DNA of 60,707 nucleotides, filler included, from Hausera hauseri (Eukaryota), in NCBI GenBank assembly GCA_046269625.1. It is 11 parts of 11 records of this genome, joined end to end, with 100 filler letters (N's around TTAATTAATTAA, not from the genome) between each part and the next. Parts side by side here need not be neighbours in the genome. Positions count along the whole stretch, not along the records: positions 34,407 to 42,535 come from JBJURY010759873.1; 10 more parts are not named here. One strand, 5' to 3'. Of this stretch, positions 34,407 to 42,535 are shown piece by piece; the stretch's first letter is position 1; the number at the start of each line of letters is the position of its first letter. The notes under the pieces were generated by a model, which did no database searches, was not told where the DNA came from, and was given only the letters and a program-made list of their open reading frames with translations. Both the position numbers and the translations under genes were made by a program.

Positions 34407-35030
34407 CCCTTGGGTGCACCCGTATGATTTTATTGAAATATATTAGGACATTAGTATTGATCTACGAATCAAAATAAATCCAGCCAAAAATATAAAGAAC
34501 TGAAAAAAAAACAAAAAAAACTTATATACAAATGAAGAAAATAAAGTGAAAACATGGAAATAAAATAATAATAATAAGCAAACTAACAAAATACTCAAGT
34601 TTTCAAGTTATACCATTTATCAAAATAAAAACACTTTTTCTATACCTGGAATCTCCTGTTCCAGTTCTTGAGAAAAAAATAATTCAATATCAATAAGACC
34701 CAATCTCAAAATCAAAATATTCAATCAAATATTGATGTCAAAACAATTATCAAAAAAATCTGCCAAAATTTCGAAACCCTAAGAAACCAAAACACATTAG
34801 AAAATGAGAAAATAACAAAATGAAAATTAAAATAAAAGCACTCACTTTATGATGGATGAAACCGGATAGTTAGAGAAAAGAATGAACAGAAGGTAAATAA
34901 AACTTAAAAGAAAGAAGCGGTTAAATTTTGTCACTAGTCACCCATCATTTACACTCATTCAAAAAAAAAAATCATTCACTCAACCTGTTACACAAAAATA
35001 TGAGGCAAAAACCTACCTATACTTACTACA
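34407..35030 (-). repeat. Partial 3' LTR (U3 side)
   Basis: Begins TGTAG right after the PPT on the minus strand; no visible overlap with the 5' LTR part, implying an LTR longer than about 1 kb. Confidence 0.75.
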
Positions 35031-35043
35031 TCCCTCCCACCTA
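35031..35043 (-). promoter_or_regulatory. Polypurine tract
   Basis: Minus strand taggtgggaggga directly before TGTAG, ~40 nt after the pol stop. Confidence 0.8.
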
Positions 35044-35083
35044 AGTTTGCCTCATATTTTTCCTAACCCACCTATTTTAACAC

Positions 35084-38000
35084 TTAAAATCCTTTATCCA
35101 TAACCCAATCATAATCTTTCACTCCTCCTCTACTCCTAGTTTGGGGTCCCTTGTACTCACTTTCATTCTCTCTATCATTCACAATACATTCCTTACATGC
35201 CTCTTGGTTAGCGTCTTCACATTCTCTCCTATGTAAGAATACAGATAGTTCTTCAATTTCTTTCTCAACCTCTTGTGACCTTACACTCATTGATACATTC
35301 CTTAATTCACTGACTATTTTCTCTATTTTCTCACAAAAATCATCTAAATCATTCACACTCAAACTGCCATCACACTTCTGATTCTCTTTAAACTCCTTCA
35401 GTCTTACTAAGATACTCTCACGTTCTTCTATCCTATCATCCAACGGAAATTTACACATTGTAAAGGTCTTGTCGGCAGTCATGTCCCCACCGTCATCCCA
35501 CCAGAAGCCAGAAAAATCATTTGATTGTCCACTGTCGTCAAATAGTCTTTTGTCTTTAATTTTGTCAGTCCTCCTACGCTTACGTTTCTCAACTAAAATT
35601 AATTCCTGTCCTTTCAACCAACATTCGTCCAGTTCATCCACACCCACAGTGACCTTACTATCTCTCTTAATCAACTCATAAACTGGATGCTCTTTCAAAT
35701 ATTCTGGAGGTTCCCTCCAAGGTCTCAGCTGCATCTGGTGTGCTCTAATTTCCTCCAAATCCTCATTATTACCCACTTTCTCTAACACATAACTAACTCC
35801 ATTCGACCTAACTTTTTTCACAACATAAGGACCTTCAAACTTTTCTCTCATCTTATTAACATTCAACCTACCCTTCTCATGCACTTCTTTCAAAACCTTT
35901 TCACCAATCTTAAAACTTTCAAACTTTTTACTTGATTCTCTCCATACTTCTCTATCATTCTCAGACAATCCTAACCTTGGTCTCACAAACCTTTCAAAAT
36001 TCATTACATATTTGCATGGAGATATACCTGTCGAACTATGTACAGTCATATTATATGCCCACAACACTCTACCTAAACACAAATCCCATTCATTTTCACT
36101 TTCACTCATCATTCTTAACATTTCACTCAAGGTACGGATTGTTCTCTCAGCTAAACCATTCGAACTTGGCATATACGGCGTCGTTCTTACATGTTCAATA
36201 CCCCATTCACTCAACAACTGTTCAAAAGCCTGACCTATAAACTCTGGCCCATTATCACTCAACATTCTTCTAGGTTTACATACACACATGGGCAACAAAA
36301 CCTCTCGCACTACTTTTGCTACATTCACACTCGTTTTGTTCTTTACAGGCACAGCATATGCAAACTTACTCTTATGATCCACCATAACTACCATTCCAAC
36401 ATACCCACTTGCAGTCACAGGTAAAGACACACAATCAATTACAACTAACTCAAAAGGCTCTTTCACATCCAACCTTAAAACAGGTGGCTGTACATACATT
36501 CTCTGAATCTTACCTTTCTGACACTCTTCACACGTTGTGGCTACATCATTCACGATCTTTCTCAACCAAGGACTAAACACTCGCTCTTTCATACATTCCC
36601 ATAACTTAAACTTCCCCAAATGTCCAAACCTATTATGCATAAGCATAACAATCCCAACTGTCCCTACTAATGAAAATACTGGCACATACACATCACTTTC
36701 CTTCAACTTTCTCATGAAATACACTACATTCATACATACTACAAACTTCCCAGCAAACCTTTTGAATTCTTCCAGCATGCATTTCCATTCATTCATAGGT
36801 CTACCAGACATAATACATTTCTTAAGTTCAACAATCATTGGACATTCCACTTGCATTCCTTCCACATCCTCATTGGTCAACAATTCCTCATCACCCACTC
36901 CCATTTTCAACATACCAACAAAATCAGCAGCACAAACATCACACTTTTGCATTTTTGAAATCACTTTACTCCCTTTCAATAACCATTCATTCCCTACATC
37001 TACTGACAACCCATTTATTCGCAAAAACTCTATTCCAAACAAAAAACAATATGGCATCTGTTCATCTTCCAATACTATAAATTGATGTGATACATTTTCT
37101 AACTTTCCCATGTTCACAATTATAGTTACTTCCTCCCAAGCAATCACTCTATTGTTACCAATCCCATTTATTCTTACACTCGTACTTCTTCTAGGAATAT
37201 ACCAACTAAATTCTTCCAATTCTCTCACAACTGAGGCATTCACTAGTGATATCTGCGCTCCAGTATCAATTAATCCACAATATATCTTATCATTCACTTG
37301 TACCTTGACTTCCATTCTTCCATTTATACCATGCACACAATGCACTGTATCTTTTATATCATCTGGCACTATAAAATTTACATCCTCATCAACAGCATTT
37401 AAATTGGGATTCTCTTCATCATTTTCATATTTCCTCTTATAACTTTTCTTCTCAATAACCCAGTTGTAATGCACTCCACTTAAACATTGCAAATGAAGTT
37501 CATTCACATTCTCTCCTTTCACACCTTTATCTCTATACACTACAGGCCTCTCACTCCCATAATGTACGCAAACTTTAACTCCAAACAACCTACTAACTAC
37601 CATTAAAACTTCCTGGAAGGGTAGAACTCCCGGATTACACATAGCTTTCAACTCTTTCACATACTTTCTAACCTTTTCTATCCCTATCTGCTCTGGCCTT
37701 TTACATGCATCTGTCATTACTTCTTTTCGCAAACCATTCACACTTTCAGGAACTCTCACATTTGCTCCATCTTTTGCCAAATCATTCAGTCCATATAACA
37801 CACTTTCAAACATAGAATCACCTCCACCTCTGGATTCCTTTCCTTTCATCAAACCTTGTGGCAAATACTCAGGATTAATAACTAAACTTTCACACTCTCT
37901 CTCACTACCAGGCAATCTCGACATCAAATCAGCAATCTCATTCCTTTCACCAGGCATGTACTCAACTATGTAGTCAAAATCACTTAAATCTTCCAATGTT

Positions 38001-40204
38001 CTTGCAAGCCTACTGTCAACTGTTCTCATTCGTTGCAAATATACTAAAGGCTGATGGTCTGTTCGTACAACAAATTTTATTCCATACAAAAACGGTCTCA
38101 ACGACTTCAAGCAAAACCTCAATGCAGCCAATTCTCTTTCAATCGTTGAATACTTTCGCTCTGTTGCACTAAAAGCCTTCGAAACATACGCGATTACTCT
38201 CTTTCGTTCACATCCATCAATCACCTGATCTTGCATCAGACATCCACCCATACAAAACCCACTTGCATCCGTATATACCTCAAGTGGACTAGCATTCTCA
38301 CTATAATCAGGATAAGCCAATTCAACATCCTTTGCAACTTCTTCTTTCAACTTTTCAAATGCTTCAATCATTCTATCATTCCATCTCACAACTGCATACT
38401 TCTTTTTCCCAGTCCACTCAGTCAAAGGCTTCATCACACCTGAACAATCTTTCATAAATTTCCTTCCAAACTCCACAAGCCCAAGAAAACCTCTCAGCTC
38501 TCTTACAGTCCTAGGCCTAGGAAAATTCTTAACTTTCTCAATGAACCTCTCAGCCTTTCGTAACCCAGATGAACTCACCTTATGCCCTAAAAATTCCACT
38601 TCATTTTCAAACCACTCACACTTAGCGACTTTCACTTTTACACCAACTTCTTCTAACTTTTGCAAAACTTCACTCACTAACCTGATGTGTTCCTCAAATG
38701 ATTCAGTCATAACTAAAATATCATCAATGAAAACCATTACATTCTTACAAGGAAACCCACTCAATACAACATTCATAGCCCTTTGAAATGCAGCAGGAGC
38801 ATTAGCCAGTCCAAAACTTAGATTTCTAAACTGGTAATGCTTCTTAGCAGTCGAAAATGCAGTCACACATCTACTATTCTCTTCCATAGGCATCTGATAA
38901 TAACCTCTCACAAGATCCATTTTCGTAAACACTTTCATCCCATACATACTATACACACACTCAGACACTACACACATCGGAAACCTATCTTTCACAGTTC
39001 TTTCATTTACCCTACGATAATCTATACACAATCTTAATCTACCATCAGGCTTTCGCACAGGCACAATCGGACTATTCCAAGGACTCGCACTCTCTTCCAA
39101 AACACCAATTCTCTCTAACTCTTCACACTGTTCTTCAATCTCATGTGCAACGGGTTGAGGGAAATGACGAGGCCTTTGGTATATAGGAGTGTCATTAGTT
39201 AAAATTATCTTAAATTCTGGTAAGTTGGAATTACCAAAATCATCATCCCCTTGACTCAAGGCCCTTCTCCTTTCCCATAACATTTGTAAAATTTTCTGCT
39301 TTTTCATTTCCCCCATCCCTTCATTCAATTTCACTTTTGCTACCAAATCATCATACATCCATTCATTCTTTTCAATTCCTCCCATAAAAGCATTCACTTC
39401 ATTTACCTGAGAAGTATCTTCCATGTTTACTACCGAATACAACTTCCCTAAAACATCACCCACATGTATTCCTCTTAATCTCTCTCTCTTCACTTCAGGT
39501 TTCACTTGCACACACACTCTAGGATTTTTTAAATCTACTATACCATCAAATACATAAGCTACTCTCTTAACTCTATACTTAGCATCATGACCATCTATCA
39601 AAAACATCTTATTCTTATCAACCTCAACTCCTACATTCTCATTCCATCCAACTTTCACACTAACAACTTTCTCCTTATCTAAAACAACATTCTCTCTTGC
39701 AAAAATTTCTATACCTTTTACCATTTTCACTCTCACATCACCTATTTCAGACACATACAATTGACACCATCCCTTTTTACCCACCTCACATTCAAACATC
39801 ATACTTTCTGGATGAATCACTATACCATTCTCTTTCAAAAACCTATAACCTAAGAGAACATCATATTTCTTACTTCTACTCTGAATTACATAAAAATCAC
39901 TTTCTTTCATCTTTACTCCACCAATTTCTACACATTCTCTAAACTTAGCAACTACAGGTACTATCATACTACCAATTCCCTTTAATTCTCCAACCACCTC
40001 TTCCTTACATTCATCCTTTAGCTTCATACTTTCATATCCTCCCATATACACAACATTCACAGTACACCCAGTATCCACTAAAGCTCTAACTTCTGCATTA
40101 CCACACTTAATCTTAACACTTAAACACTGATTCACAAAACTGCCTTGTAAAACATCTACACTCGAAAAACCTTCTCTAACATTCATAACATTCACCCCAG
40201 TCAC
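35084..40204 (-). CDS. pol: Pol polyprotein: PR1 - spacer - RT - RNase H - OTU-like - PR2 - integrase - C-terminal tail
   Basis: LVDTGC (DTG at 40067-40075); WNSP, LCIDYR, FIDD (38720-38731); YTDAS, ERELAA, TDHQPL, ADLMSR; GGGDSMFES..LHLQCLSGVHYNWV (~37455-37850); LIDTGAQIS (DTG at 37259-37267) ..FLFGIEFL; HNRFGH..CEEC, IDC, SDNGPEF, GLAERTIRT, FEGPY. Confidence 0.95.
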   Translation of the reverse strand: MTGVNVMNVREGFSSVDVLQGSFVNQCLSVKIKCGNAEVRALVDTGCTVNVVYMGGYESMKLKDECKEEVVGELKGIGSMIVPVVAKFRECVEIGGVKMKESDFYVIQSRSKKYDVLLGYRFLKENGIVIHPESMMFECEVGKKGWCQLYVSEIGDVRVKMVKGIEIFARENVVLDKEKVVSVKVGWNENVGVEVDKNKMFLIDGHDAKYRVKRVAYVFDGIVDLKNPRVCVQVKPEVKRERLRGIHVGDVLGKLYSVVNMEDTSQVNEVNAFMGGIEKNEWMYDDLVAKVKLNEGMGEMKKQKILQMLWERRRALSQGDDDFGNSNLPEFKIILTNDTPIYQRPRHFPQPVAHEIEEQCEELERIGVLEESASPWNSPIVPVRKPDGRLRLCIDYRRVNERTVKDRFPMCVVSECVYSMYGMKVFTKMDLVRGYYQMPMEENSRCVTAFSTAKKHYQFRNLSFGLANAPAAFQRAMNVVLSGFPCKNVMVFIDDILVMTESFEEHIRLVSEVLQKLEEVGVKVKVAKCEWFENEVEFLGHKVSSSGLRKAERFIEKVKNFPRPRTVRELRGFLGLVEFGRKFMKDCSGVMKPLTEWTGKKKYAVVRWNDRMIEAFEKLKEEVAKDVELAYPDYSENASPLEVYTDASGFCMGGCLMQDQVIDGCERKRVIAYVSKAFSATERKYSTIERELAALRFCLKSLRPFLYGIKFVVRTDHQPLVYLQRMRTVDSRLARTLEDLSDFDYIVEYMPGERNEIADLMSRLPGSERECESLVINPEYLPQGLMKGKESRGGGDSMFESVLYGLNDLAKDGANVRVPESVNGLRKEVMTDACKRPEQIGIEKVRKYVKELKAMCNPGVLPFQEVLMVVSRLFGVKVCVHYGSERPVVYRDKGVKGENVNELHLQCLSGVHYNWVIEKKSYKRKYENDEENPNLNAVDEDVNFIVPDDIKDTVHCVHGINGRMEVKVQVNDKIYCGLIDTGAQISLVNASVVRELEEFSWYIPRRSTSVRINGIGNNRVIAWEEVTIIVNMGKLENVSHQFIVLEDEQMPYCFLFGIEFLRINGLSVDVGNEWLLKGSKVISKMQKCDVCAADFVGMLKMGVGDEELLTNEDVEGMQVECPMIVELKKCIMSGRPMNEWKCMLEEFKRFAGKFVVCMNVVYFMRKLKESDVYVPVFSLVGTVGIVMLMHNRFGHLGKFKLWECMKERVFSPWLRKIVNDVATTCEECQKGKIQRMYVQPPVLRLDVKEPFELVVIDCVSLPVTASGYVGMVVMVDHKSKFAYAVPVKNKTSVNVAKVVREVLLPMCVCKPRRMLSDNGPEFIGQAFEQLLSEWGIEHVRTTPYMPSSNGLAERTIRTLSEMLRMMSESENEWDLCLGRVLWAYNMTVHSSTGISPCKYVMNFERFVRPRLGLSENDREVWRESSKKFESFKIGEKVLKEVHEKGRLNVNKMREKFEGPYVVKKVRSNGVSYVLEKVGNNEDLEEIRAHQMQLRPWREPPEYLKEHPVYELIKRDSKVTVGVDELDECWLKGQELILVEKRKRRRTDKIKDKRLFDDSGQSNDFSGFWWDDGGDMTADKTFTMCKFPLDDRIEERESILVRLKEFKENQKCDGSLSVNDLDDFCEKIEKIVSELRNVSMSVRSQEVEKEIEELSVFLHRRECEDANQEACKECIVNDRENESEYKGPQTRSRGGVKDYDWVMDKGF

Positions 40205-40208
40205 ACCT

Positions 40209-40249
40209 GAGGGTTCACAGACTTGAACCCTCTTCCTAATTAGTTTCCC
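40209..40249 (-). promoter_or_regulatory. -1 programmed ribosomal frameshift signal (G_GGA_AAC + 9-bp hairpin)
   Basis: Slippery heptamer at 40249-40243 directly before the gag TAA; the -1 frame is open into pol; downstream stem GAGGGTTCA-agtctg-TGAACCCTC (40232-40209). Confidence 0.85.
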
Positions 40250-42051
40250 CCTACGGAATTTCCAACAAAATTCCCATTAACATTCTCTTGTATATTACTT
40301 ACACTTCCCTCCACATTCCTACACTGATTTCCTTGCCCTTCAATTTGATTACTTCTACCATTCTGCCCCTGATTACCATTCACAAAACTTCTCACACTCC
40401 AACACATACCTGTCACATGACCTACTTTCCCACACTGAGTACAAGTACTTCTAGGTTCCCTACACATTCTAGAAAAATGCCCCTCTTGTCCACAATTACC
40501 ACAAATACATCTTATCATACTATTATTTACATTTGAAACCTGTGGACAGTTACGCACCCAATGGTCCATACCACCACATCGTCTGCAACCAGCCAACTGA
40601 GGATTCCTACATTCATTCGCCAAATGTCCAACTTGTCCACAACTAAAGCATGCACCTGTTGCCCATCTACACTCAGATCTCATATGTCCATTCTTACCAC
40701 ATCTAAAACATTTAACTATATCTCTATTTGGTATCACATTCCTATTAGTCACACTTCCATTCACTCTATTTCCTCCAGCCTGACCCCTTCTGTTACTCTG
40801 TCTAAATCTTTCATTATTCCTGGTATTCCCATTCATTCTATTGCCCTGACTTGCGAATTGCACATTCATTCCAGTCTGACTACCATAAAAATCCTCCAAA
40901 AACTTCACCATTACTTCTAATGGGTTGGCCTTCAAGGCATCTCTATAGGTAGGATATTGGGGCATTTGAGCATTGGCCACTCTTCCACTATTTACTTCCA
41001 CTCTCTCACTTTCATTCCTCTCAGTTACCTCAAATGCTCTATCTTCTACAATTTCTAACACATCATCCCATAACAATCTCTCACCAGTCCACTTCATTTT
41101 TTCCTTCCTTCTAGCATTTATATATTCAGACACAGTTATTGGAATCGTTTCTAAAAACTTTTTCATTAATTCTTTACATTCATTTATTCCCTCATCCCCA
41201 AATTTCTTTCTGGCCAAAGTTTCCAATCTATGAGCATACATGTCAATCCTTTCATTTCTTCCCATTCTGGCTTTATCAAAATCATTCACTTTCCTATACT
41301 TCACTCCAGCTTTCACTCTCTTCACTTGATCAATTATTCTCTGTTTCACTACTTCATACTTAGGTTCGCCTACACTCACAATTGCTTTATAAAAATCTAA
41401 CATTCGTCCTTCCAAAAATTCATTTAATTCTTTCACCCAAAAACTCTTATTTTCACTAAATCTTTCCCTACAATACTTTTCATACTCTTTAAAAAAGTCT
41501 GTCACGTCCCTTGGTCCATATACGTTGTATTTATTTATTTTTGGAATTTCTCTAATCAGTACACTTCTCGTTACATCATAGTCAGAGTCACTTTCATCAG
41601 ATTCATCCTCTTTCTCACATTCATTCTCACCATTTGAACTAGAATACAGGGAGTCAATACTTTTACTCTTTCTCAACCTCATTCTCCTTTCATGCCTTCT
41701 ATTCTTAGATGTTTTCTTTTTCCTTTTCTTTTCAGGTTCACTCTTTCTCATGTTCTCCTCCGGAATCTCATCCAATTCAAATTCCACTTTACCAACATCA
41801 TCCCCAACAGGAGTAGAGGTCACTTTCTTAGCAGCTCCCTCAACATTCCCAAGTCTACTATTTAACAATTCCTCCATTTTAAAAGCAATTTTCTCATCCA
41901 TTCTTCTTTCCATCTCTTTCATTCCTTCTGACATTTTACTCAACTGATCAATTAACTCTTCATTCTCTCTCTCTTTCTTCTTTAAGGCCTCCCGCAATCT
42001 TTCAACCTCCAACTGCCAGTCTTCATTCGTTTTCATTTTAGCCATAGCCAT
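40240..42051 (-). CDS. gag: Gag with N-terminal coiled coil and five CCHC zinc knuckles
   Basis: 603-aa open ORF; CFRCGKNGHMRSEC, CFSCGQVGHLANEC, CRRCGGMDHWVRNC, CGNCGQEGHFSRMC, CTQCGKVGHVTGMC. Confidence 0.93.
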   Translation of the reverse strand: MAMAKMKTNEDWQLEVERLREALKKKERENEELIDQLSKMSEGMKEMERRMDEKIAFKMEELLNSRLGNVEGAAKKVTSTPVGDDVGKVEFELDEIPEENMRKSEPEKKRKKKTSKNRRHERRMRLRKSKSIDSLYSSSNGENECEKEDESDESDSDYDVTRSVLIREIPKINKYNVYGPRDVTDFFKEYEKYCRERFSENKSFWVKELNEFLEGRMLDFYKAIVSVGEPKYEVVKQRIIDQVKRVKAGVKYRKVNDFDKARMGRNERIDMYAHRLETLARKKFGDEGINECKELMKKFLETIPITVSEYINARRKEKMKWTGERLLWDDVLEIVEDRAFEVTERNESERVEVNSGRVANAQMPQYPTYRDALKANPLEVMVKFLEDFYGSQTGMNVQFASQGNRMNGNTRNNERFRQSNRRGQAGGNRVNGSVTNRNVIPNRDIVKCFRCGKNGHMRSECRWATGACFSCGQVGHLANECRNPQLAGCRRCGGMDHWVRNCPQVSNVNNSMIRCICGNCGQEGHFSRMCREPRSTCTQCGKVGHVTGMCWSVRSFVNGNQGQNGRSNQIEGQGNQCRNVEGSVSNIQENVNGNFVGNSVGGN

Positions 42052-42080
42052 TTATCAAATCCTTCAATCCCCCAATGAGA

Positions 42081-42098
42081 GCCCCACGTTGGGCGCCA
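42081..42098 (-). promoter_or_regulatory. Primer-binding site, tRNA-Lys1,2
   Basis: Minus strand TGGCGCCCAACGTGGGGC, the canonical 18-nt Lys1,2 PBS, 7 nt after the LTR-terminal CA and 29 nt before the gag ATG. Confidence 0.92.
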
Positions 42099-42105
42099 AA
42101 AAATA

Positions 42106-42460
42106 TGTAGCAGATTTTACTTAAATATATGAAAATCTGGGCTCCCACGGGAGAACTGAAGGATATAAAACACTCGCACCACAGTCTTATGTTTATTAAA
42201 ATTTCTACAAAAGGAAGGAAGGAAGAAACACAAGATTTTATTTACAAGAAAAATAGCAGAGCGAAGAATTGAGCAGCAAAAAGCCAAAAAAATACAAAAA
42301 AATAAACTGCAGCAAAAAATAAAAAACAAATTCGATTGCAAAAAAATATATAAAATAAGCAAATCAATTTAATATATACAAGCAAAAAAAAAATATAATA
42401 CAAACTCAACAAAAATATACACTACAAATAAAGCATAAAATTTAAAGTGAAAATAACCAC

Positions 42461-42535
<75 letters not shown>
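42106..42535 (-). repeat. Partial 5' LTR (U5 side) running into an (AAT)n microsatellite at 42461-42535
   Basis: Ends CTACA before the PBS; the contig breaks in 25 AAT units. Confidence 0.75.

Follow-up and report, generated by a model that had tools for sequence, protein, structure and literature searches.

The window analyzed here, a 60,707-nucleotide stretch of DNA from Hausera hauseri (assembly GCA_046269625.1) joined from 11 parts, holds in positions 34407-42535 (JBJURY010759873.1) a single long terminal repeat (LTR) retrotransposon, with all its features on the minus strand. This element, an autonomous and apparently intact Ty3/Gypsy retrotransposon, encodes a Pol polyprotein with two additional domains between RNase H (RH) and integrase (INT): a diverged member of the OTU deubiquitinase (DUB) fold with serine in place of the catalytic cysteine, and a second, internal retropepsin (PR2) besides the N-terminal one (PR1). 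The order PR-RT-RH-OTU-PR-INT, where RT is the reverse transcriptase, is a feature of a large, seemingly undescribed Ty3/Gypsy clade. We favor, with a probability of about 0.6, a reading in which the OTU-like domain is a module directed at ubiquitin or a ubiquitin-like modifier (UBL) that shields Pol or integrase, and PR2 is an active second protease.

Pol is encoded by an open reading frame (ORF) that cannot be ascribed to chance, because the composition of the strand predicts a stop codon every ~11 codons and this frame runs for 1706. A first-pass annotation of the sequence had described an open Pol of this length with ~300 extra residues past the motif ADLMSRLP; we place this motif at res. 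758-765, and the ~310 residues that follow (res. 766-1075) lie between RNase H and the N-terminal region of integrase. In the Pfam-based map the order PR-RT-RNaseH-INT, with RT before INT, is kept, and the two additional domains precede INT.

The domain between RNase H and PR2 is genuinely homologous to OTU deubiquitinases, from which it has diverged very far. Scanned alone, res. 766-965, which include the ~150 residues between RNase H and PR2, match no Pfam family. An AlphaFold2 model of res. 779-935, built from an alignment of ten relatives, has a predicted local distance difference test (pLDDT) score of 86.4 and a predicted template-modeling score (pTM) of 0.84. All 40 Foldseek matches to this model in the PDB at E<=0.001 are OTU domains, with OTUD3 (4bou) as the best (E 4.7e-6, TM 0.68/0.75), which bears out the OTU fold that the first-pass annotation had proposed. 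VIA-align superimposes the model on OTUD3 with a Z-score of 16.0 and a root-mean-square deviation of 2.5 Å over 128 of 141 residues, followed by yeast Otu2, OTUD5, OTUD1, and nairovirus OTUs at Z 12-15, and a language-model atlas ranks OTU clusters first (0.93). At the level of sequence, a PDB search with the single copy in the window returned OTUD3 only, at E 0.22, and a profile of 22 short family members found OTUD3 at E 1.1e-5. The G-D-S motif had also suggested an SGNH/GDSL hydrolase, which we rejected: the fold is that of an OTU, the top matches include no SGNH structure, and the domain spans only ~150 residues.

The catalytic cysteine of OTU deubiquitinases is absent, and Ser797 stands in its place. 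The first-pass annotation had called exactly this exchange, with the histidine kept, from two stretches that we find in position: SRGGGDSMFESV (res. 791-802, 37799-37834) and LHLQCLSGVHYNWV (res. 903-916, 37457-37498). In the profile alignment with OTUD3, GgGDS lies over GDGNC, so that Ser797 falls on the catalytic Cys, and GiHyNpV lies over GEHYDSV, which pairs His912 with the catalytic His and Asn914 with the Asp. The model agrees with this assignment, as Ser797 opens the first helix and His912 the last strand, like their counterparts in OTUs.

These positions are held nearly constant across the family. At the nucleophile position, 241 aligned clusters carry Ser (226), Ala (6), Cys (5), Thr (3), or Tyr (1), and eight of these 15 rare replacements are Cys or Thr, likewise nucleophiles. 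His912 is kept in 246 and Asn914 in 244 of 250 clusters. In a tree of 177 proteins based on RT-RNase H, residues other than Ser turn up at scattered tips (five independent changes for Ala, three for the four rows with Cys), and Ser is therefore the ancestral state, whose replacements found no lineages. To judge by these alignments, Ser797, His912, Asn914, and the Gly-rich loop before the serine are under strong purifying selection. The domain as a whole is kept too: the first-pass annotation had asked whether relatives lack the insert or let it decay, and we find that they retain it, better conserved than either protease. Expressed as phmmer bits per residue against the copy in the window, in a set picked through the OTU domain and hence somewhat biased for this comparison, conservation is 1.22 for RT, 0.71 for the integrase core, 0.48 for the OTU domain, 0.27 for PR2, 0.25 for the integrase N-terminal region, and 0.16 for PR1.

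Further residues of the domain stand out in the same alignments. Arg826 (247/249 clusters), Gln906 (248/252), and Cys907 (229/252) are near-invariant and have no counterpart in the OTUD3 alignment; Gln906-Cys907 lies at 37484-37489. In the model, Cys907 sits on the strand paired with that of His912 and might in principle serve as nucleophile instead. An invariant L-P-x-G-L (LPxGL, 37850-37864), whose Pro is found in 134 of 134 aligned clusters, lies where RNase H meets the OTU domain; it may be cleaved during processing or belong to the first OTU strand.

PR2 is a full retropepsin that carries a DTG motif of its own. Pfam recognizes two separate retropepsin stretches in Pol, as the first-pass annotation had anticipated, and the internal one is also a match by fold. 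Scanned alone, PR1 passes the gathering scores of PF13650 (E 5e-8) and PF13975 (E 1.8e-6), and PR2 those of PF13975 (E 3.5e-7), PF09668, PF13650, and PF00077. The motifs listed for each protease are all in place: LVDTGC (res. 42-47) and LLGYRFL (res. 117-123) in PR1, and GLIDTGAQISLV (res. 977-988), INGIG (res. 1012-1016), and FLFGIEFL (res. 1054-1061) in PR2, which thus has the LIDTGAQ active site, the Gly-rich flap, and the FGIEFL helix motif (G-x-D/E-F-L). The PR2 half of a 297-residue model of OTU and PR2 matches the RVP domain of DDI1 and the HIV-1 and EIAV proteases equally (E ~4e-6 to 1e-5). In that model, two confident domains (pLDDT >90) flank a linker with pLDDT <50 (model residues 149-176), and the pTM of 0.53 indicates no fixed mutual orientation.

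PR1 and PR2 form two separate clades, divided by one branch (SH-aLRT support 97), in an unrooted tree without outgroup of 64 proteins in which both proteases were detected, the comparison that the first-pass annotation had called for. Because each protease forms one side of this single branch, both date from the base of the clade. The tree is compatible with PR2 being either a duplicate of PR1 or a separate capture. The D[TS]G signature is kept in 64 of 64 N-terminal and 58 of 64 internal proteases, and the Asp and Gly of the PR2 DTG are invariant in alignment A4. We also predicted the complex of PR1 with PR2, which gave an interface score (ipSAE) of 0.61 against 0.00 for the best control, with at least 76% of contacts shared by three runs and a partner pLDDT of at least 75; 51 of 78 solved complexes attain the mark applied here, as do 2 of 108 mismatched pairs. 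Contacts are closest between the DTG of PR1 (chain residues 25-27) and that of PR2 (26-28), as in the canonical retropepsin dimer. Since retropepsin homodimers have been solved in abundance, what the prediction shows is that the pair is compatible with a canonical dimer, not that a heterodimer is preferred.

Other traits distinguish the two proteases. The PR1 helix motif LLGYRFL (39836-39856) occurs in this copy and its close relatives, where the family consensus is LGxDFL; the conserved Asp is Arg in the PR1 of this copy, and PR2 keeps an acidic residue (FGIEFL). Ahead of the PR2 DTG lie a conserved C-x-H, ~20 residues upstream at the end of the linker (37325-37342), and a conserved Cys, ~4 residues upstream (37268-37279); both (H4 and C22 of alignment A4) are absent from PR1.

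The architecture extends far beyond the copy in the window. We searched 1.84 billion cluster representatives with the OTU domain. The matches, which come from assemblies of ENA, Logan, and JGI, number 282 clusters (defined at 50% identity) with E<=1e-3 and 147 with E<=1e-10; a search for related loci in metagenome contigs and viral contigs found none. The place of the domain in long proteins is invariably after RNase H, near residues 760-1000, and local domain mapping gives PR-RT-RH-OTU-PR-INT-Cterm for every sufficiently long protein; none of the mapped proteins carries the OTU-like domain outside a retroelement. A search with RT-RNase H returned 1143 proteins at E<=1e-30, and among its best 120 matches, 91 of 92 new proteins carry the OTU-like domain. 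The single exception is a chimeric multi-RT gene model of Cordylochernes scorpioides.

In the reading we favor, the OTU-like domain would act on ubiquitin or a UBL, either as a Ser-His-Asn hydrolase or by binding without cleavage. By analogy with the OTU proteases of viral polyproteins, it would prevent the ubiquitin-dependent destruction of Pol, integrase, or the pre-integration complex, and integrase, just downstream, would be its obvious client. PR2 would process the C-terminal half of Pol, releasing the OTU-like domain and integrase across the disordered linker, and might work as a homodimer or paired with PR1. PR2 is most likely active, with a predicted cut in or near the linker that would free integrase; pairing with PR1, as modeled, is doubtful. 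Should the domain act on ubiquitin or a UBL, the chance that it is a working hydrolase would be a little under even, that of a binding-only module somewhat lower, and what is left would go to cis-processing or another role. The joint near-total conservation of Ser, His, Asn, and the Gly-rich loop would speak for catalysis, as would the failure of Ala variants to spread.

Several observations weigh against this reading. The Pfam OTU model (PF02338) is silent on the copy in the window and weakly matches five of the 22 short relatives (best E 0.0022); its gathering score is reached by none of the 22, nor by any of three further full-length relatives, one of them a Cys-bearing protein in which the model finds no match at all. 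Because this model barely matches the family, the domain is invisible to automatic annotation. That ubiquitin is the ligand is an assumption drawn solely from the fold, Gly replaces the Asp that the canonical Cys loop (GDGNC) has at -3, and some of the clusters with Ala at the nucleophile position are long ORFs. Nor does a conserved triad prove catalysis, since the Drosophila Ser-OTUs CG3251 and Otu are inactive on ubiquitin chains in vitro despite their conserved Asp and His (PMC4654579). The behavior of these fly proteins, for which reversion of Ser to Cys brought no rescue (PMC4654579), also fits the view that the OTU-like domain is a pseudo-enzyme that binds ubiquitin, a UBL, another protein, or RNA, or acts as a scaffold, with Ser797 as a helix N-cap and His and Asn in structural roles; the six Ala clusters and the Gly at -3 point the same way. 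We regard a pseudo-enzyme as possible, with the odds against it, as domains that are otherwise only ~30-40% identical retain each of Ser, His, and Asn in 94-98% of clusters, the Ala variants are tips and no lineages, and more than half of the rare replacements are nucleophiles too. In addition, Otu purified from insect (S2) cells had DUB activity according to a statement in PMC12263153 that cites Ji 2017 and 2019, and by that account a Ser-OTU may be an enzyme. The boldest version of enzymatic function, a serine-nucleophile OTU hydrolase (Ser797-His912-Asn914; a serine DUB or ubiquitin esterase) fixed throughout the history of the clade and acting as a unit with the adjacent retropepsin, whether as a DDI1-like ubiquitin-directed module or with a single-chain PR1-PR2 heterodimer, seems unlikely to us; according to PMC4654579, "serine DUBs" are as yet an undescribed class.

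The domain might instead be a cis-acting polyprotein protease, like arterivirus PLP2 or tymovirus PRO, that cuts Pol at its own boundary, in which case ubiquitin would be irrelevant. Its neighbors on both sides in the polyprotein have to be separated from each other, and the invariant LPxGL lies at its N-terminal edge. Viral OTU-fold proteases do process polyproteins. We consider this role very unlikely here, as the element already has two retropepsins at its disposal, the alignment reveals no conserved Gly-Gly-type site at the domain boundaries, and a papain-like fold with Ser as its nucleophile should make a weak peptidase. A different proposal concerns the proteases, namely that PR1 pairs with PR2 to give one aspartic protease, a heterodimer that may be intramolecular, so that a single Pol chain would be complete and need no Gag-Pol dimerization. 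The predicted complex with its DTG-to-DTG contact and the retention of both proteases side by side throughout the clade favor such a pair. It is nonetheless doubtful, because the prediction may reflect mere likeness to the many solved retropepsin homodimers, homodimers of PR1 or PR2 are equally plausible, and the two domains lie ~850 residues apart in the chain. That the extra 300 residues are an artefact, by misassembly or by a nested foreign insertion in one copy, could be suspected from the truncation of both LTRs by the piece edge. This explanation is effectively refuted: hundreds of independent clusters from the three assembly sources have this order, likewise in frame, the protease trees show co-divergence, and the ORF is uninterrupted.

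The remaining anatomy is that of a Ty3/Gypsy element (Table 1). Integrase has an H2C2 zinc-binding domain, a DDE core, and a GPY/F module, as determined by Pfam and by motif. The C-terminal extension of Pol past GPY/F has no Pfam match; it is conserved in most relatives and contains the motifs FxGF (35498-35518) and, at its end, TRSxGxV (35120-35140).

Table 1. Features of the Hausera hauseri Ty3/Gypsy element, in positions of the window. Residue numbers refer to Pol.
Feature	Residues	Positions	Strand	Basis or detail
5' LTR, 3' end only, cut by piece edge		42106-42535	minus	ends ...CTGCTACA at 42106
Primer-binding site TGGCGCCCAACGTGGGGC		42081-42098	minus	
gag ORF, 603 aa		40240-42051	minus	ORF; Pfam zf-CCHC, E 6e-19
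gag zinc knuckles, five C-X2-C-X4-H-X4-C		40402-40710	minus	
-1 slippery heptamer GGGAAAC		40243-40249	minus	sequence; gag frame G GGA AAC
Frameshift-stimulating hairpin GAGGGTTCA/TGAACCCTC		40209-40232	minus	predicted folding
pol ORF, 1706 aa, uninterrupted		35084-40204	minus	
PR1, N-terminal retropepsin	31-122	39839-40114	minus	Pfam
PR1 DTG	44-46	40067-40075	minus	
Reverse transcriptase	383-543	38576-39058	minus	Pfam RVT_1, E 5.5e-30
RNase H	608-743	37976-38383	minus	Pfam RT_RNaseH, E 3.5e-28
OTU-fold domain	779-926	37427-37870	minus	predicted fold, Foldseek, VIA-align, profile match, conservation
Cys-loop equivalent GGGDS		37814-37828	minus	Ser797 codon TCT at 37814-37816
HLQCLSGVHYN		37463-37495	minus	His912 at 37469-37471, Asn914 at 37463-37465
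Acidic linker, variable length, predicted disordered	927-965	37310-37426	minus	low pLDDT, alignment
PR2, internal retropepsin	966-1062	37019-37309	minus	Pfam, fold match
PR2 DTG	980-982	37259-37267	minus	
Integrase H2C2 zinc-binding domain	1185-1232	36509-36652	minus	Pfam PF17921
Integrase catalytic core	1249-1346	36167-36460	minus	Pfam rve PF00665, E 5.5e-14
Integrase GPY/F motif FEGPYVV	1456-1462	35819-35839	minus	
Pol C-terminal extension past GPY/F, ~250 aa		35087-35839, including GPY/F	minus	sequence, relatives
Polypurine tract GGTGGGAGGGA		35031-35041	minus	
3' LTR, 5' part only, cut by piece edge		34407-35030	minus	starts TGTAGTAAG at 35030

The first-pass annotation had called the primer-binding site (PBS), polypurine tract (PPT), frameshift signal, and ORFs intact. 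All four are present; the ends of the element are not complete, as both LTRs are cut by the edges of the piece. "Intact" therefore applies to the coding part and the priming signals, and the LTR pair is seen only as non-overlapping ends: the two partial LTRs share no sequence there, and no repeat pair was found within the piece. The LTR boundaries are inferred, that of the 5' LTR from the TGTAG...CTACA terminal inverted repeat, in which the TGTAG directly after the PPT matches the CTACA upstream of the PBS. As in Ty3/Gypsy elements, the PBS follows the 5' LTR and the PPT precedes the 3' LTR. The PBS is putatively of the tRNA-Lys type. An (ATT)n microsatellite of ~25 units (42462-42535) lies inside the 5' LTR at the piece edge.

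Gag-Pol is produced by -1 frameshifting, because the slippery heptamer precedes the gag stop, a hairpin follows, and the pol frame is open from 40276. The stop codon TAA (40240-40242) comes directly after the heptamer, and the hairpin, 10 nucleotides past the slippery site, has 9 base pairs, is GC-rich, and has a predicted folding energy of -16.9 kcal/mol.

The sense (minus) strand is extremely poor in C, at 8.4% in pol and 8.3% in gag, with 29% G. At third codon positions C falls to 3.9% in pol and 5.3% in gag, with both ORFs still open, and the observed/expected ratio on this strand is 0.40 for CpG and 2.2 for CC. The bias in amino-acid composition that results (V 10-12%, M ~4%, T ~2.5%, H ~1.4%) is shared by the closest relatives (P0001-P0007) and absent from more distant family members, and the exchanges L->V, L->M, and L->I show asymmetry. 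To go by composition, this looks like long-term C avoidance in a sub-clade rather than recent hypermutation of one copy. Antisense ORFs of 80-182 amino acids overlap pol, for example at 36537-37085 (+) and 37110-37442 (+); on the plus strand G makes up only 8.7%, so that TAG and TGA are rare and such ORFs are expected by chance.

Compared with canonical Ty3/Gypsy elements (Metaviridae), the PBS, PPT, CCHC gag, -1 frameshift, PR-RT-RNaseH-INT order, and H2C2, DDE, and GPY/F integrase are alike, whereas the ~310 extra residues with an OTU fold and a second retropepsin set this clade apart throughout. The OTU-fold domains that viral replicase polyproteins contain strip off ubiquitin or ISG15 and are capable of protecting the replicase. 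Nairovirus L, arterivirus PLP2, and tymovirus PRO are examples of OTU proteases in such polyproteins (PMC3968130); they share with our element an OTU fold inside a replicase polyprotein, and the nairovirus structures match the model at Z ~12-13, but they are Cys enzymes of RNA viruses, in contrast to a Ser-bearing domain in the Pol of a retroelement. Among mobile elements, Ginger1 DNA transposons encode a Gypsy-type integrase with a fused OTU or Ulp1 domain (PMC2836005), and animal Helitrons with OTU domains likewise bring this fold into a mobile element. Compared by description only, the OTU of Ginger1 lies C-terminal to integrase, is recognized as pfam02338 (a cysteine protease family), and belongs to an element without RT, whereas the domain described here lies before integrase, with a retropepsin after it, bears Ser, and goes unrecognized by Pfam.

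The OTUD4-family Ser-OTUs of Drosophila, Otu and CG3251 (PMC4654579), resemble our domain in that Ser replaces the catalytic Cys and the His is conserved; they differ in being cellular genes with sporadic, repeated Cys-to-Ser switches, whereas Ser is ancestral and clade-wide here. The structures closest to the OTU-like domain are OTUD3, Otu2, and OTUD5, which do not imply a link to OTUD4. DDI1/Ddi1 (UBL plus RVP) offers another retropepsin coupled to a ubiquitin-system domain, and PR2 resembles it in passing PF09668 and in matching RVP structures as well as it does HIV-1 protease. The partner here is an OTU fold, unlike the UBL or UBA of DDI1, PR2 scores better with the gag-asp_proteas model, and the Pfam and fold comparisons give no evidence of common descent of PR2 with DDI1.

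OTU domains in mobile elements (Ginger1, Helitrons) and in viral polyproteins, as well as Ser-for-Cys OTUs in flies, are thus already known. New here are an OTU-fold domain inside the Pol of an LTR retrotransposon, a Ser that is ancestral and under selection throughout a large clade, and an obligatory second retropepsin after the OTU-like domain. The first-pass annotation had known of no description of this domain order, and a search of the full-text literature, with Repbase, Dfam, and GyDB outside its scope, found no publication on PR-RT-RH-OTU-PR-INT and nothing pertinent on OTU domains or second proteases in Gypsy elements.

If our reading is correct, Pol has included a second protease and a domain of the ubiquitin system ever since the origin of a Ty3/Gypsy clade that comprises at least 282 clusters at 50% identity and, in public assemblies, over 1000 Pol proteins. 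The link of OTU and Ulp1 domains with Gypsy-type integrases would then extend from DNA transposons such as Ginger1 to retrotransposons, and this would suggest ubiquitin-dependent control of integrase or Pol as a general pressure on such elements. The clade is also a large natural data set in which Ser is selected at the nucleophile position of an OTU fold, which makes the dispute over whether Ser-OTUs are enzymes or pseudo-enzymes directly testable, and its two retropepsins in one chain bear on how bilobed aspartic proteases may arise.

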